Positions 13,899-60,902 are shown, counted from the first letter of the stretch. The stretch is 64,000 bases of DNA from Octopus sinensis (GCF_006345805.1 NC_043014.1:49104001-49168000); one strand, 5' to 3'. The notes: generated by a model from the letters alone, not told the origin. Numbers and translations: made by a program.

Positions 13899-14140
13899 AA
13901 GTGAAAGTATCTGACATTACAACAGAGAAATGTTTTTCTTTCACTTTTGACACGTAATACTGAAATAGTAGAGAAGATACGATATTGCTGTTGGCTCGCC
14001 CTAGGCAAGAAGTTATTATTTTTTTTTGCTCATGACACCACATGGACCCTAATCAAGTCTAGCAGAATGTATGTCCAGTTACAGTTCATCCCTGTTACAT
14101 AATAGTTTCATTTTAATAGTTTCAATATTAAAGTGAAAGT
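13899..14140. promoter_or_regulatory. Cluster of IRF-element/PRDM1-like motifs; also from 32574 and from 47939
   Basis: AAGTGAAAGT at 13899, inverted CTTTCACTTTT at 13938, AAAGTGAAAGT at 14130. These match the GAAANNGAAA IRF-E core. Function is inferred. Confidence 0.5.
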
Positions 14141-14159
14141 ATCTGACATTACAATAGAG

Positions 14160-15139
14160 GAATCTTTTCTGTTTGATGGACGGAATTTTCTAGTTAACTA
14201 AACAATTTCAAACTTCGTATACTGGTAGAATGTGTCAAAAGAAAACATTTTGTAAACAAAATTGAAAACAAAATTGTAATTCGTAACTTAAACGTAGTTT
14301 AATTTTACGAATTTTAACTCATGAAATCGCAGCATTCGAGCTCAAATTATTTACTGCGTCTAAAAACTCACACACACACGTCTTATTCATCCTTGTCTCT
14401 TCTGTCTTCTACATGTGCTAGAAATAACAGCTATATCTCATCAATCGATGAATTTCGTCGCCCAATAAAAATATTAACGATATTTTTTGAATATTTTCTT
14501 TATTTTTTTTTACCATGGTTTTGAAGGGACAGAAACAACAAAAACAAAACAATAATATGCCTAAATCGGTCTCGCGCGTGGAGTGTGAATAGTATTGTAA
14601 AAATTTGCGAAATATTTTTTCATAAAAGGATGCCCCAGCTTGTCGGAAGCTGTGATATAAATTGGGAAAAAAATCCTCGACACCAGTGCGTAATTGGTAC
14701 TTAATTATCGACCCCGAAACGATGAAACATTGACCCCTTCCCTTCTGGTTTATTTACCTTTTGTGCAAATTTGTTGCGGCAAGTGGCAAAACACGATCGT
14801 GTATGTGTGCGTATGTGTGAGTACGTATATGTCCGTTTGTATGTGTGTGTACGCTTATATATTAATTACTATGTGCTTGTGCAAATGTATATGCATGTGT
14901 TTGAGAGAGAGAGAGAGAGAATGTGTGTGTGTCGTGCGTCTGCTATATTTCTCTATCAATATCGATAACGCAGCAATGCTGGGATTTCATTGGTTAAAAT
15001 TCGTAAAATTAAACTACGTTTAACTTACAAATTACAATTTTGTTTACAATAATGTTTTCTTTTGACACATTCTACCAGTATACGAAGTTTCAAATTGTTT
15101 AGTTAACTAGAAAATTCATCCATCAAACAGAAAAGATCC
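14160..15139. mobile_element. 980-bp non-autonomous DNA transposon with ~165-bp TIRs and an 8-bp TSD (hAT-like)
   Basis: 14160-14336 is the reverse complement of 14975-15139. CAATAGAG flanks both ends (14152-14159, 15140-15147). An uninterrupted paralogous site is present at ~13899-13960. Confidence 0.88.
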
Positions 15140-16045
15140 CAATAGAGAGATGTTTTACTTTCACTTTTGACATGTAATACCGGTTAAACCAGTATTCGAG
15201 TAGTCAATGCGGAAGTAAAATGTTTTTACAGAAGTCTTTCACTTTTACTCATTTAGTTGGTGACATTAATGGGCGTTGATATTATTATCTGAGATTCCCA
15301 AAACAGTTTTTATTATTCTTATTATTTTCCCTCTTCAATCATTGGTTTTAAAATTCGTAAAATTAACTACGTTTAAGTTACAAATTACAATTTTGTTTAC
15401 AATAATGTTTTCTTTTGACACATTCTACCAGTATACGAAGTTTCAAATTGTTTAGTTAACTAGAAAATTGCGTCCACCAAACAGAAAAGATCCAATAGAG
15501 AGATGTTTTACTTTCACTTTTGACATGTGATATCGATTCACCAGTATTCGAGTAGGTCAATGCGGAAGTAAAATGTTTTACAGAAGTCTTTCACTTTTAC
15601 TCATTTAGTTGGTGACATTAACGGGCGTTGATATTATTATCTGAGATTCTCAAAACAGTTTTTATTATTTCTTAATTATTTTCCTCTTCAATCATTGGTT
15701 AAAATTCGTAAAATTAAACTACGTTTAAGTTACAAATTACAATTTTGTTTACAATAATGTTTTCTTTTGACACATTCTACCAGTATACGAAGTTTGAAAT
15801 TGTTTAGTTAACTAGAAAATTGCGTCCACCAAACAGAAAAGATCCCAATAGAGAGATGTTTTACTTTCACTTTTGACATGTGATATCGATTCACCAGTAT
15901 TCGAGTAGGTCAATGCGGAAGTAAAATGTTTTTACAGAAGTCTTTCACTTTTACTCATTTAGTTGGTGACATTAACGGGCGTTGATATTATTATCTGAGA
16001 TTCCCAAAACAGTTTTTATTATTTCTTAATTATTTTACTTCTCCA
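15140..16045. repeat. ~353-bp tandem repeat (IRF-site flank plus right TIR), 3 flank copies upstream of the copy-2 ATG exon
   Basis: AAAAGATCC ends at 15139, 15493 and 15845, each followed by TTTACTTTCACTTTTG and TCTTTCACTTTTAC. Confidence 0.92.
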
Positions 16046-16180
16046 ATCTCGACTGTTTTACTTTATTAATCCCTTCACAACTTCCAGCATTCCAATAGGA
16101 CCTGGTTTCCAGAGAGGAACACTTGCACAAAAAGTGACACACTCTCTCTGTATATAATATTCGTTGCCATATATTTACCC

Positions 16181-58299: not shown

Positions 58300-58674
58300 G
58301 CGCGTGTGTGTATGTGTGTGTGAGAGAGTGTTATATCATATTATATTACATAATATAAGTGATCTGCAACAGCCTGTCCATCTTGTTGTTGTTGACGTTG
58401 TTGTTGATGATGATGATGATGATGATGCATTTATCACTCTGTCAAACACACCTCTTACATTGTTCTCTCACTTATTTACGCTCAGTTTTCTGTGCGCATA
58501 TTAAAAACATCGAACATTCGGATCCAAAATGCTCAGCCACTACATCAACCGTATCAGACAAGGAAGGTTTGACATTGTTTCATTAACTAAAAATCGAAAA
58601 TTGGAGAATATCTTTTTGTCAATGATAATGTGTGATATCATATTTCATACGCAATCATTTTGTTTTTATTTCAG

Positions 58675-60155
58675 GATGAAGGAAGTAGAAGAGAATCGTA
58701 TAGGGAGAGAATTAAAAGATTTCCAAATGTAATGGAAGAAAGTTTTGAGAAAGCCGAAGAAGGTTGGTCGTCTTTCTACAAAAAAGTAGAAAGTACGTTG
58801 AATAATGATATCTTATTTGGTTTAGAAGATGAGATTCGTCAAAAGAACGTCCTAGTATATATTCTGTGGCAGATGAACGATAAATTTCAGCTGAAAAATT
58901 AGCCAATGAAGTTCGAGAAAAGAAGCCAGATAACCTGGTGGCATTAACCAACCTTGCATTCATTCATTTGTACGATGGAAATATCCCTGAGGTAAGAAAC
59001 CTTTTGGATAATCTAAGCAAGCTTGAAGAAAGAGAAAATTTCTCGCTGATAGAAGCAGAAGGCAAAAGAAATGTTGCTTATTGTTTAGCTACTATATCTT
59101 TTGAAGATCATGAAAGAGCTGTCGAACTTTACAAAGAGTCTCTCAACGTTTGTCCAGACGATTATCTGTGTATGTTTTCTATTGCTTTGTTGCAATATCG
59201 TTGTTTAAAAAAGAACATAGATAAAGAGAAAAGACGTGAAAATATTAAGGAATCAATACAGTACTTAGAGAAAATACGATGTGCTTTTCCACGCCATATT
59301 GATAAGGCCCTAATGGGAAGAACATTAGCATTGATTGGTTTGTTTCAACTTAGTCCTTATAATTTTCATAGTCAACCAGCTAAAGAGTATTTTCAGAGAG
59401 CTCTTGATATTTCCCCTGATGACCGCTATGTTTTGGAGAAAAGTGCCTATCATTATATACGTTCATATCAGAATGAAGAAGGAAGAAAATTGCTTGAAAA
59501 AGCAATTGAAATAAAGGCAACATCATATTCTCATCATCAGCTTGGATTAGTTTATCTAAGAATGAATACACCAAAATATACATATGTCCCAATGAACAAA
59601 CAATTCTCAAAAGAAACGAATGAATTTGCGAAAGTTTTAAAACATGCTCAAAGTATTCCTCATATAGAAAGGAATGAGTTAATCAACAAAGCTGAATATC
59701 ACTTTCAACAAGCTCTTGAACTTTCTCATGAATGTTCACCTGCTCTCTATGATATCATTTTATTATATATGTCTTTGAAAGAATATGACAATGCCAGGAA
59801 GTATTGTGAAAGATTTAAAGCAGATAACAAAATGCAAGATGTTAATTTTAACATTTTGTTTGGAAGATTATGTTTTAAAGAAGCAGATGTAAAAAATGAT
59901 GAAGAAGAAAAAGATCAATTAAGACGTACAGGAATGGATAGGTTTGTTCTGGCTCTTAAATCTGCTGTAGAATTTCTTCCTTTCAACAAAGACCTGATAG
60001 AAATTTGGGAGATAAAGGAAATAATACTTGATTTATATGAGTATGGAAATGGAAATACTGAATACAAAAAATTTGTTTTGGAATTCATTCACTCAGTAGA
60101 AGACCTTGCCAATGACAAAGCGTTCCAAAATATACTTCACAAGAGTGAATTATAA
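58675..60155 (+). CDS. IFIT/TTC22-like TPR gene copy 4, large exon; one 1-bp deletion in a T-run at ~58885, possibly an error
   Basis: ORFs 58660-58902 and 58938-60155. GATAAATTTCAG here versus GATAAATTTTCAG in copies 1 and 2. Confidence 0.82.
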
Positions 60156-60450
60156 AAGATAAATTGTGTTCATAAATATACTTTCCTTATTACTTTCTTT
60201 ATTGATAATACTCAACAATATTTTGAAATTCATTGTTATATATCTCACGTTTTCTGAAGTAATACCAAACACGTTTATCTAAAGCTAAATTTTAAAAATC
60301 ATATAAATTTAGACTACTCCTTTCTTTGAAACACAAGCTGAATGTAGCAAAGAATTCTACAGGAAATATTACTGCCTTTGTTATGGATGTGGCCCTGAAA
60401 CCAACGTTGAAATGACGTCAGAGCATTCAAAGGATGACGTCATAACTAAC

Positions 60451-60902
60451 TTTCATTTTGACATATTTTAACATCCCCAAACAGTGAAGAAGTGGCAGAA
60501 AATATTGGAATGAATCTAGAGATATGCTTTTGCTTGAAAGTTCCATTTGATAATCGTGACTACATATTGGGATGATGTAAAACTGGAAACCTTTGCATTA
60601 TACTGAAACATCGTTGGAATATTGGAATTCTATAAGTAACAATCAAAAATTACTAATTTACACAAAAGACACCAAGTAAATCATTGAAGATCGATAACCT
60701 AAGTAAGGACGACATTTTACTATCAGGAAACATGAAGCCAGAAATTCCAAAACATTTAAAAAGTTTTCCTCAATTTAAATGGCAATGTGGAGAGAGAGAG
60801 AGAGAGAGAGAGAGAGAGAGAGAGAGAGAGAGAGAGAGAGAGAGAGAGAGAGAGAGAGAGAGAGAGATGAATAGTTTTAGTTTCCTTTGCAGACTATATT
60901 AG
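60451..60902 (+). pseudogene. Decayed TIR-like relic (copy 4)
   Basis: Same sequence and same lesions as 6684-7136. Confidence 0.55.

Follow-up and report, generated by a model that had tools for sequence, protein, structure and literature searches.

The window analysed here, a stretch of 64,000 nucleotides, belongs to Octopus sinensis (GCA_006345805.1 CM016876.1:49,104,001-49,168,000), and the cephalopod origin that the original prediction had proposed is therefore correct. Searches by tblastn and self-BLAST showed that it carries four tandem units on the + strand, ~15-20 kb each and 97-98% identical, every one of which holds a single TPR gene with two coding exons (Table 1) for an all-helical TPR protein of ~505-512 aa. 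The four predicted tandem copies were thus confirmed, except that copy A (4992-6394) falls outside the span to which they had been assigned (13899-60902), which holds three. Likewise, the predicted size of ~505-510 aa holds for copy C, which alone among the four has an uninterrupted frame (505 aa), but not for copies A, B, and D, which have been disabled by independent frame-breaking indels (MAFFT indel list) and contain no in-frame stops apart from these indels. The frame breaks may be assembly errors, most of all that of copy D. In copy C, exon 1 encodes MAEEMQETLQ (donor boundary MAEEMQETLQ/GTGAGT) and the large exon begins behind its acceptor (tttcag/GAT) at 40375; alignment showed exon 1 to contain 10 codons in this copy and 17 in copies B and D, with intron 1 in phase 0. 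The same exon 1 product forms the N-terminus of the NCBI model for copy C (P0003), and this model splices into the dead linker by way of an internal GT-AG intron (41542-42012). In the public gene calls, the products are cut short at 194 aa for copy B and 92 aa for copy D. The automatic annotation of NCBI already names the window genes 'IFIT5-like'. Further array members lie on the same chromosome outside the window, including at least one additional unit ~29 kb downstream (copy F, P0001), whose ORF is intact and whose exon 1 has been lost. Since the frame is broken in all window copies but one and copy F is without exon 1, much of the array may be dead.

Table 1. Features of the TPR gene array in the O. 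sinensis window (positions counted from the first nucleotide of the window).
Feature	Position	Strand	Basis and remarks
Copy A exon 1	beyond left edge of window
Copy A large coding exon	4992..6394	+	79-nt deletion near 5459; MAFFT indel list
Copy A frame change	4977-5444 (frame 3), 5462-6391 (frame 2)		tblastn
Copy A decayed linker and TIR relic	6477..7018	+	just past stop codon; two-frame tblastn, P0012/P0014 aa 532-718; stops in translation
353-bp tandem repeat, 3 copies	14987..16048	.	immediately before copy B exon 1; TRF, self-BLAST
353-bp repeat in copy B intron 1	20850-21530		TRF, self-BLAST
353-bp repeat, other sites	1238-1562, 33688-34056, 36245-36924, 49052-49420, 54191-55227		TRF, self-BLAST
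Copy B exon 1, coding part	16367..16417	+	17 codons, MAEEMQKITGEMQEILL, donor CTG/GTGAGT; alignment; tblastn of P0002 aa 1-16
Copy B intron 1, non-LTR retrotransposon (RT and 3' part)	16555..19131	-	extends 5'-wards past 19131; junctions 16554/19132 vs 34528 (self-BLAST); Pfam matches from copy D element
Copy B retrotransposon RT ORF, frameshift-split	16695-17687 and 17669-19249	-	ORFs
Copy B large coding exon	24974..26453	+	two 1-nt deletions, 25459 and 25519, neither in a homopolymer
Copy B decayed linker and TIR relic	26536..27077	+	followed by (GA)n tract 27081-27250; weak match to family TIR HMM at 26754-26903
Copy C exon 1, coding part	34362..34391	+	10 codons, donor CAG/GTGAGT; 21-nt deletion vs B and D; alignment
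Copy C intron 1, retrotransposon remnant (endonuclease side)	34528..35730	-	RT removed by 2.56-kb deletion; right boundary approximate; junction 34528, raised GC at 34-36 kb, homologous to copy D endonuclease ORF
Copy C large coding exon	40375..41862	+	intact, 495 codons and stop; ORF, acceptor site, Pfam TPR matches, IFIT homology
Copy C decayed linker (frame 2) and TIR relic (frame 1)	41945..42486	+	4 and 3 in-frame stops, frameshifts; tblastn P0012/P0014, 45-49% identity
Copy D exon 1, coding part	49727..49777	+	17 codons
Copy D intron 1, non-LTR retrotransposon	49915..53215	-	GC 0.44-0.52
Copy D element, RT and zf-RVT ORF (811 aa)	50155-52590	-	Pfam RVT_1 1.5e-32, zf-RVT 4.9e-10
Copy D element, endonuclease ORF	52694-53215	-	Exo_endo_phos 2.7e-10
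Copy D large coding exon	58675..60155	+	1-nt deletion in T4 run at 58884, maybe an assembly error
Copy D decayed linker and TIR relic	60244..60791	+	tblastn, translation, TIR HMM

The original prediction had likened the encoded protein to vertebrate IFITs from two peptide segments compared by eye, and HMMER placed both in register with the same segments of IFIT1. A phmmer search returned IFIT5 as the best PDB match of the octopus protein (E = 1.6e-7, residues 87-404), and a family profile matched IFIT1 (E = 5e-29), IFIT5 (1.8e-27), and IFIT2 (7.6e-12), all co-linearly from the N-terminus (HMMER). Designed consensus TPR proteins outscored IFIT1 in the raw profile search by virtue of many repeated matches, and the next natural TPR protein, OGT (E = 5e-20), was matched over one short stretch only. 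The relationship to IFITs is a single co-linear alignment, running from the N-terminal 'FPxxF / CHFTW' region to ~residue 420 with no repeat-on-repeat match, and the two groups have in common non-repeat landmarks, i.e., an invariant Arg at R186/R187 and an HH(Q/H)LGL motif at H287/Q288. By hhalign, an amphibian IFIT was matched with a probability of 99.4% (E = 1.4e-21, 322 columns), and a profile built from octopus proteins only placed a vertebrate IFIT within the best 150 of 1.84 billion proteins. When an AlphaFold2 model of the octopus protein (pLDDT 87.8, pTM 0.84) was compared to the PDB with Foldseek, the top 14 matches were all IFIT1 or IFIT5 (TM 0.55-0.67); the next family reached TM 0.27-0.43, with OGT at 0.27, and IFITs were separated from all other TPR proteins by a 1000-fold gap in E-value and a twofold gap in TM. 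Housekeeping TPR scaffolds, the alternative raised in the original prediction, were thus not the best structural matches, with IFIT1/IFIT5 in the lead and OGT far behind. Taken together, the profile matches and the model indicate that the window protein is a true distant homologue of IFIT1/IFIT5 and not a generic TPR scaffold, and that its predicted structure contains the IFIT-type, non-canonical TPR clamp. At 14-20% sequence identity the homology is remote, and it does not establish a common function of the mollusc and vertebrate genes.

Beyond the stop codon, every window copy aligns to the long octopus paralogs P0012 and P0014 (tblastn), with 45-50% identity to P0014. Translations showed this region to be a linker-TIR relic with 7 stops in ~215 codons and frameshifts, at the same positions in all four copies; with a premature stop, the 7 further stops, and the frameshifts, none of the four has an intact C-terminal TIR. 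A search with the IFIT-like TPR profile retrieved 136 proteins at E<=1e-10, 45 of them with full-length TPR coverage, and showed this domain to be homologous throughout a mollusc family that includes the window copies; the named relatives were all molluscan but one. The family is spread over cephalopods, gastropods, and bivalves, and its members carry, within a single large exon, the TPR domain, then a helical linker, and a TIR at the C-terminus (the CDS of a Mercenaria relative lies in one exon). Members include O. sinensis LOC115221491 (P0014, 741 aa), O. bimaculoides LOC106878804 (P0012), and 'uncharacterized' proteins of Pomacea, Batillaria, Lymnaea, Biomphalaria, Littorina, Mercenaria, and Argopecten, and a 'TIR-TPR' category is present in mollusc immunome surveys (PMC9334734). 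The C-terminal domain is common to 87 of 162 family and related proteins. Its profile gave TIR domains only as top PDB matches (TLR15 at 1.1e-6), its model (pLDDT 87) resembles the TIRs of Hydra TRR-2, RUN1, IL-18Rbeta, SARM1, and MyD88, and its best-conserved acidic position is Glu in fewer than half of the family TIRs. The window copies have the same single large exon as this family and a TPR domain 51-54% identical to that of the octopus long forms (~20% to other molluscs), but their linker and TIR are dead behind a stop after KSEL and the short forms are tandemly amplified. We conclude that the window genes are TIR-less derivatives of a mollusc-wide TPR-TIR family and not full members of it; this derivation, with a dead TIR relic retained in each copy, is new here.

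Vertebrate IFIT genes have ISRE motifs near the promoter and are induced by IFN, IRF3, or IRF7. For the window genes, IRF-E and GAS motifs had been reported upstream, and such strings do exist, AANNGAAA at -90 and -69 and TTCTGAGAA at -186 relative to the ATG, representing IRF half-sites and one palindromic GAS-type site, respectively. However, their frequency is that of the background, since other 1-kb windows at the locus equalled their counts in 34% and 42% of cases, and no ISRE core (GAAANNGAAA), fuller ISRE, or NF-kB site was found within 1 kb upstream of the ATG; matches to the ISRE-core string GAAACTGAAA elsewhere fall in a dispersed SINE-like repeat. The predicted two-exon plan stood insofar as there are two coding exons. 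In IFIT genes the first exon codes only for ATG + 2 nt (PMC3688568), and this strict plan is absent from the window genes, whose exon 1 has 10-17 codons and phase 0. With motifs at chance level, no ISRE, and a phase 0 exon 1, the interferon-stimulated-gene layout lost its value as a sign of inducibility, and any inducibility of these genes is presumptive.

Pocket residues were taken from PMC9677429 and mapped onto copy C and the family. Mutation of T37, Q41, K150, R186, Y250, R253, Y254, R260, Q288, or F337 of IFIT5 strongly lowers PPP-RNA binding (PMC9677429, table 5). Copy C keeps R186, Y250, and Q288 as well as the equivalent of H287, and has Tyr, still aromatic, at F337; the positions of R38 and W147 in IFIT1 are occupied by Lys and Tyr, respectively. 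At other pocket positions, copy C has T for K150, E for R253, K for Y254, N for K257, and I for R260, the Q41 equivalent (IFIT1 Q42) is S, and the complete IFIT5 RNA 5'-end pocket is thus absent from copy C by residue mapping over the IFIT5 list. The mollusc family as a whole retains the equivalents of R186/R187 (invariant), K150/K151 (as Arg), W147 (as Tyr/Phe), H287, and R260, with R at K150 in 18/23 and R or K at R260 in 15/23, and E at R253 is its norm. Three pocket basics (R150, K269, and K272 in copy C numbering) are kept by the long forms and lost in the short forms. Since the equivalents of K150, R253, K257, and R260 are lost and the copy C protein is acidic (net charge -12, pI 5.5), these results speak against RNA binding of the IFIT type by the short form, and the basic RNA groove anticipated by the original prediction was not supported.

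The description of the genes as rapidly evolving proved apt. Values of dN/dS among copies were 1.5-1.9, the coding exon has diverged by 6.4% vs 1.3% for the rest of the unit (~five times faster than the flanks), the paralogs, copy F included, are mosaics, and copies have been disabled independently. However, ~78 of 90 changes are nonsynonymous vs 81% expected, and dN/dS above 1 is not statistically significant alone. Since the dS of the exon (0.044) exceeds flank divergence, gene conversion or older coalescence, and not positive selection alone, may explain the excess. At 71-86% identity, O. bimaculoides, O. vulgaris, and O. sinensis all retain an open TPR frame next to a relic full of stops. 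O. vulgaris has at least 8 clusters of proteins at 90% identity, O. bimaculoides a single short form. Gain and loss of copies are ongoing, a birth-and-death pattern characteristic of gene families of immunity; an immune role for the array itself is presumptive.

The explanation that we favor, with a probability of about 70%, is a young, unstable array of IFIT-related TPR genes that are TIR-less offshoots of the mollusc TPR-TIR family. Closest to the original prediction would be interferon-stimulated-gene-like, IRF/STAT-inducible antiviral effectors with a basic groove for the 5' ends of non-self RNA, like that of IFIT1/IFIT5. True IFIT homology and fold, the tandem array, the two-exon plan, the GAS-type site and IRF half-sites, and the pocket residues kept by copy C (R186, Y250, H287/Q288, the aromatic at F337, Lys at R38, and Tyr at W147) are all consistent with such effectors; however, background-level motifs, no ISRE core within 1 kb of the ATG, ISRE-core strings elsewhere that belong to a SINE-like repeat, five replaced pocket residues in an acidic protein, and the loss by short forms of basic residues that long forms and the wider family retain make this unlikely. 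That the IFIT likeness is generic or convergent, and the protein a housekeeping scaffold, is hardly credible. TPR repeats are degenerate, designed consensus proteins do beat IFIT1 in a raw profile search, and Liu et al. (2013) placed invertebrate BLAST matches to IFIT outside the family, but generic similarity is contradicted by the one co-linear alignment from the N-terminal motif onward, by the Arg and HH(Q/H)LGL landmarks, by the E-value and TM gaps, and by the recovery of a vertebrate IFIT with the octopus-only profile.

We also consider it quite improbable that the locus is a decaying pseudogene cluster without present function, in which copy C is open only through youth. Considering that the equally old relic has 7 stops in ~215 codons, more than 10 stops would be expected in the 495 codons of the large exon, yet three octopus species retain full-length TPR frames, copies A, B, and D are free of in-frame stops once their indels are set aside, and the coding exon diverges more than the neutral flanks and not equally. 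Decay would nonetheless account for the frame-breaking indels in three of four copies and the missing exon 1 of copy F, and it is compatible with dN/dS at or above 1, with the odd internal intron into the dead linker that the NCBI copy C model requires, and with the retrotransposon and the recombinogenic 353-bp repeats that lie within and ahead of intron 1.

On the favored explanation, the octopus short form lost its linker and TIR to a stop codon after '...KSEL', an event older than the divergence of O. bimaculoides from O. vulgaris and O. sinensis, and was later amplified by unequal crossing-over. Gene conversion then shuffled the short forms, which have diverged mainly by amino-acid changes and have been disabled repeatedly. 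In the long proteins, the IFIT-like clamp would bind a ligand, the most plausible one being the 5' end of a nucleic acid, and binding would trigger TIR-mediated signalling. The short proteins would be cytosolic, and since the clamp is kept and three pocket basic residues are lost, they most likely constitute a diversifying ligand-binding module without a signalling output of its own. Such a module could modulate the long sensor, serve as its decoy, or be an IFIT-style sequestering factor with altered specificity.

In SARM1, a TIR effector is coupled to a ligand-binding domain of helical repeats (ARM), and in the mollusc long forms the TIR is similarly joined to a clamp of helical repeats (TPR). 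The parallel is one of logic and not of membership; the sensor domains are unrelated in sequence, and the mollusc forms have no SAM and no clearly conserved NADase Glu. Like vertebrate IFIT genes, the window genes are arrayed in tandem, have expanded within their lineage, and pair a small first coding exon with one large exon; the products of both are all-helical, ~480-510 aa long, and alike in the Arg at R186/R187, an aromatic residue at Y250, the HHQ motif, and a hydrophobic motif at the N-terminus. The window genes differ in sequence (only 14-16% identity), in the acidic protein, the replaced pocket basics, the lack of an ISRE within 1 kb upstream, and their descent from a TIR-fused gene. 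To our knowledge, no TIR-fused ancestry is known for vertebrate IFITs and molluscs have no recognised interferon ligand. A published phylogeny confines the IFIT family to jawed vertebrates (PMC3688568). A broader scenario, which we hold to be possible but rather unlikely, is that the IFIT clamp is far older than the interferon system and was at first the sensor half of a TPR-TIR receptor; mollusc IFIT-like-TIR proteins would then sense nucleic-acid 5' ends directly in the cytosol and signal via their own TIR, and vertebrate IFITs and octopus short forms would be independent TIR-loss derivatives. If this is true, loss of the TIR would have converted the sensor into a module free to bind or sequester, independently in vertebrate IFITs and in the octopus short forms.

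Protein searches with the long TPR ORF at 40360-41862 gave high-identity matches to Octopus proteins only, and the contig encoding a 99%-identical protein (P0003, the NCBI model for copy C) corresponds to window positions 24362-52172, with 100% identity across 27,811 bases. This match places the window on chromosome CM016876.1 of Octopus sinensis (GCA_006345805.1), at 49,104,001-49,168,000, in agreement with the cephalopod origin first proposed. Self-comparison of the window showed four tandem units (A-D) that are 97-98% identical and ~15.4 kb long without the RT part of an intronic retrotransposon, or 18-20 kb with it. 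Large exons were located by tblastn using the intact ORF as query; exon 1 lies ~6 kb upstream of the large exon in copy C and ~9 kb upstream in copies B and D. The original prediction of four tandem two-exon TPR genes was correct in the number of copies and exons and too narrow in its span, which leaves out the large exon of copy A; exon 1 of that copy falls beyond the window's left edge. Compared with B and D, exon 1 of copy C is 21 nt shorter through an in-frame deletion; the splice acceptor of the copy C large exon is tttcag/GAT at 40375. The array extends past the window, with a further unit (copy F) encoding protein P0001 ~29 kb beyond the right edge. Scans of the window for tRNAs and Rfam families returned no matches.

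Features of the array (window coordinates unless a region is named)
Feature	Position	Strand	Remark
Copy A large exon	4977-6391		tblastn
Copy B exon 1	16367-16417		17 codons
Copy B large exon	24959-26450		tblastn
Copy C exon 1	34362-34391		10 codons, ATG...CAG/GTGAGT
Copy C large exon	40360-41859		tblastn
Copy D exon 1	49727-49777		17 codons
Copy D large exon	58660-60152		tblastn
Retrotransposon	1-about 1200		leftmost window occurrence
Retrotransposon, unit B	16555-about 20000	-	RT ORF frameshifted
Retrotransposon remnant, unit C	34528-about 35730		RT half deleted (2.56 kb)
Retrotransposon, unit D	49915-53215	-	811-aa RT ORF open
353-356-bp repeat	14987-16048, 20850-21530, 33688-34056, 36245-36924		
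353-356-bp repeat, further sites	49052-49420, 54191-55227, 1238-1562; L002 (region of the copy F unit) 4346-6503		
SINE-like element with TTTGGTAGACGGAAACTGAAAGAAGCCCGTCGTATATATGTATAT	46620, 47184, 50026, 16666, 10340, 12909 and others	-	
Inverted duplication, unit A only	10666-13155		~400 bp (10666-11066 vs 12651-13053) around a 1.6-kb insert
(GA)n tract	27081-27250, 42490-42570, 60790-60870		directly 3' of TIR relics; length differs by unit
Intergenic (TA)n and (TATA)n	9174-9308, 45469-45603, 63790-63932		microsatellites

A GC-rich non-LTR retrotransposon (47-52% vs 33%) occupies intron 1 of every unit, and its insertion is therefore older than the unit duplications. Its ORFs encode an endonuclease (Exo_endo_phos) and an RT plus zf-RVT, and it is a mobile element of the host. 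That copy C lacks it was ruled out, since a deleted remnant is present. A tandem repeat of 353-356 bp, in 1-3 copies per site, is found just upstream of exon 1 and within intron 1; in the downstream P0001 gene, exon 1 was deleted by recombination between two such sites. The 1.6-kb insert within the inverted duplication of unit A is absent from units B and C, and part of it is 80-91% similar to an intron element at 2150-2529.

In Pfam searches, the copy C protein matched generic TPR repeats only. Its best single-sequence match in the PDB was human IFIT5 (E 1.6e-7; one alignment, 87-404 vs 93-388), including 'SHHQLGL' against 'LHHQMGL'. We then used a family profile of 23 TPR-domain sequences, drawn from a profile search run exhaustively over 1.84 billion representatives. 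It matched IFIT1 at 5e-29 in two co-linear stretches (6-188 vs 7-198 and 245-415 vs 232-383), IFIT5 at 1.8e-27, an N-terminal fragment of IFIT1 at 2.3e-17 and IFIT2 at 7.6e-12 (6-341 vs 5-374). Comparable or better scores were obtained only by designed consensus TPR proteins, through many repeated matches, and the best natural protein outside the IFITs was OGT (5e-20, one short stretch). Two octopus segments that had been paired by eye with IFIT segments are in register in this profile alignment. Among the best 150 matches of an octopus-only profile was an amphibian protein that is an IFIT5 homologue at 2.4e-117, and hhalign aligned the family with this amphibian protein over 322 columns (probability 99.4%, E 1.4e-21). 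A word-indexed search with the family profile returned octopus and generic bacterial TPR proteins only and is therefore uninformative on taxonomic breadth.

For the copy C protein of 505 aa, an AlphaFold2 model was built (pLDDT 87.8, pTM 0.84). Its top 14 Foldseek matches were all IFIT5 and IFIT1 structures (E 4e-10 to 5e-9, TM 0.55-0.67, ~500 columns), followed after a gap by OGT (8e-7, TM 0.27) and then by other TPR scaffolds. Since housekeeping scaffolds do not head this ranking, the prediction of an IFIT-like protein rather than such a scaffold is upheld, and we take homology of the octopus TPR proteins to IFITs as established at the level that profile and predicted-fold comparisons allow.

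Two long paralogs, P0012 of O. bimaculoides (736 aa) and P0014 of O. sinensis (741 aa), each continue ~220 aa past the TPR domain. The P0014 gene, LOC115221491, is intact and lies on the reverse strand of the same chromosome, 3.5 Mb from the array (CM016876.1 52,717,057-52,749,486); it has a small first exon, an intron of ~10 kb and one large exon, and encodes the TPR domain, a linker and the TIR. This C-terminal extension is common to 87 of 162 family and related proteins. When a 30-sequence profile of the extension was compared with the PDB, only TIR domains stood at the top of the list, led by TLR15/TLR2 (1.1e-6) and continuing with TLR6, IL-1RAcP, oyster TIR-STING, TLR1, TRAM and MyD88. 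Its AlphaFold2 model (pLDDT 87.2) matched the TIRs of Hydra TRR-2, RUN1, SPARTA, IL-18Rbeta, SARM1 and MyD88. Pfam detected no TIR in the octopus long forms and gave a sub-threshold TIR_2 in two relatives only; the TIR call is therefore based on the profile and the AlphaFold2 model. A single C-terminal sequence gave only noise against the PDB (phmmer), and the isolated C-terminal fragment of P0014 matched nothing in a word-indexed search, its parent protein included. Profile and model together identify the extension as a TIR domain. NADase TIRs carry a catalytic Glu; in the corresponding region of the family TIR alignment, the best-conserved acidic position is Glu in 14 of 30 sequences. All but one of the named relatives are mollusc proteins, labelled 'uncharacterized', from Argopecten, Mercenaria, Pomacea, Batillaria, Gigantopelta, Lymnaea, Babylonia, Littorina, Biomphalaria, Bulinus and Patella; in Mercenaria, a single exon holds the entire CDS.

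The extension of P0012 and P0014 is also recognisable, by tblastn, directly 3' of the stop codon in all four window copies, at 45-50% identity and in two frames. Translation of this relic, defined by tblastn to P0014, shows a stop directly behind '...KSEL', four more within the linker and, past a frameshift, another three in the last domain, after which a (GA)n tract follows; the family TIR HMM, run on a six-frame translation, recovered two of the four relics, weakly. Since the stops occupy the same positions in all four copies, TIR loss preceded the tandem duplications, and since short forms of O. bimaculoides and O. vulgaris likewise end in 'SEL', it is also older than the divergence of these species. 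The genes of the window thus derive, by loss of the TIR, from a family of IFIT-like TPR plus TIR proteins that is found across molluscs. The NCBI model P0003 (451 aa) places a GT-AG intron at 41542-42012, inside the copy C large exon; it leaves out the stop codon with the 100 codons before it and continues into 52 codons of dead linker, up to the frameshift. If this intron has RNA support, part of the copy C relic is still transcribed and spliced.

Among copies A-D, only C has an open frame. Copy A is broken by a 79-nt deletion, copy B by two 1-nt deletions, neither in a homopolymer, and copy D by a 1-nt deletion in a T4 run; public gene calls give a 194-aa product for B and a 92-aa product for D. 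These disruptions are independent and of differing kinds, and assembly error is possible, above all for copy D. Once the frame was restored by alignment, no in-frame stop was found in any of the four. The relic serves as a neutral control, with 7 stops in ~215 codons vs 0 in 495 TPR codons. Considering also that the TPR frame is open in three species at 71-86% identity, the comparison indicates that this frame, though fast-changing in sequence, is held open by selection. Young copies are individually being lost, and the pattern is one of birth-and-death evolution, as in many immune gene families.

Comparisons of C with A, B or D gave dN of 0.069-0.080 and dS of 0.043-0.048 (Nei-Gojobori), a ratio of 1.5-1.9. 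A ratio above 1 was not accepted as proof of positive selection, since by itself it falls short of significance and dS is raised too. Exon dS exceeds flank divergence, so that part of the excess must come from more ancient sequence types, retained or moved by conversion; over the first 670 nt of the exon copy F matches C exactly, and thereafter it is of the A/B/D type. Aligned B and C units diverge by 6.4% in the coding exon and 1.3% elsewhere, with a peak of 10.3% at 41151-41450, in the part that corresponds by alignment to the IFIT subdomain II/pivot region. The C and D proteins differ at 68 amino acids, 29 of them in residues 236-370 and only one in residues 146-190.

Pocket residues were taken from the IFIT1 and IFIT5 PDB matches and the mutational table of PMC9677429 and aligned to the family HMM. 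All 23 family sequences have Arg at IFIT5 R186 (IFIT1 R187), Leu at IFIT1 I183 and Tyr or Phe at IFIT1 W147. His is kept at H287 in 20, Arg at K150/K151 in 18, Lys or Arg at IFIT1 R38 in 17, Phe or Tyr at Y250 in 16 and Arg or Lys at R260 in 15, while R253 is mostly Glu, followed directly by a basic residue. This conservation indicates that the long forms keep much of an IFIT-like pocket. Octopus short forms retain R186, Y262 (= Y250), H298-Q299 and Y364 (= F337), and have T150, N269 and I272 in place of the R, K and K of octopus long forms. The copy C protein as a whole is acidic (net charge -12, pI 5.5), whereas IFIT5 residues 93-388 have a pI of 8.4. A basic RNA-binding groove is not supported for the window proteins, and their ligand has more likely been changed or lost.

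IRF-E and GAS motifs upstream of the genes had been read as a promoter signal. These strings occur at background frequency, and neither an ISRE core, an extended ISRE nor an NF-kB site lies in the 1 kb preceding the copy C ATG. That 1 kb holds six AANNGAAA half-sites (background 4.6 +/- 2.0; 34% of 1-kb windows reach this number) and one TTCTGAGAA, at -186 (42% have as many). A TATAAA six bases before the ATG is unable to serve that start codon. Across the window, TTCNNNGAA is not enriched (32 vs 27.5 expected), and GAAANNGAAA shows an apparent five-fold excess (41 vs 7.9 expected). As evidence for ISREs this excess was ruled out, since it stems from the presence of four duplicated units, from GAAATGGAAA strings in coding sequence and from a SINE-like repeat; the repeated element behind part of it carries GGAAACTGAAAGAAGCC. 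A dispersed SINE-like element carries TTTGGTAGACGGAAACTGAAAGAAGCCCGTCGTATATATGTATAT, with a perfect ISRE-core string, so that ISRE motif counts in this genome are inflated. In vertebrate IFITs, exon 1 consists of the ATG and 2 nt, and ISREs lie no further than about 200 bp away (PMC3688568), whereas octopus exon 1 spans 10-17 codons in phase 0. The interferon-stimulated-gene (ISG)-style layout is accordingly a loose likeness and is no evidence for inducibility.

Our best explanation as a whole, to which we give a probability of roughly 0.7, joins a structural and evolutionary account to an immune mechanism. On profiles and predicted folds, we hold with high confidence that this is an IFIT-homologous family with a mollusc-wide ancestral TIR fusion and TIR loss in an octopus lineage; sequence comparison shows, again with high confidence, that the tandem amplification is recent and has been accompanied by conversion, fast amino-acid change and the death of copies. 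The immune mechanism is proposed with moderate confidence. The long proteins would be cytosolic sensors that capture a ligand in the TPR clamp and signal through the TIR; because the pocket landmarks are conserved, the most plausible ligand is a nucleic-acid end. The short proteins of the window would be diversifying clamp-only modules that may act on the long sensor as modulators or decoys, or may sequester ligand with altered specificity. An ISG-like RNA-binding effector would suit the IFIT-like fold, and we think it unlikely beside the replaced pocket residues of the short forms and the background-level promoter motifs. That the array is dead would agree with the broken frames of A, B and D; with copy C open and the TPR codons free of stops, this seems less probable still. 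A generic TPR scaffold is scarcely credible next to the IFIT structures that lead the Foldseek ranking.

The origin of IFITs has been placed at jawed vertebrates, together with interferon, with invertebrate hits excluded (PMC3688568). A survey of the Aplysia immunome has a bare 'TIR-TPR' category, without comment (PMC9334734), beyond which our literature searches turned up no study of IFIT-like genes in octopus or other molluscs. The IFIT-like name itself is already known from NCBI automatic annotation ('interferon-induced protein with tetratricopeptide repeats 5-like' in O. sinensis, '1B-like' in O. vulgaris); what appears to be new is that the TIR-TPR class is linked to the IFIT fold and that a dead TIR follows each octopus gene. 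An invertebrate family homologous to IFITs in profile and predicted fold, whose ancestral mollusc form is joined to a TIR, offers a testable route to foreign-RNA sensing or restriction in animals without interferon and to the origin of IFITs. The locus itself is a natural experiment, bringing together amplified, fast-diverging TIR-less genes, their own dead TIR, and intact and broken copies.
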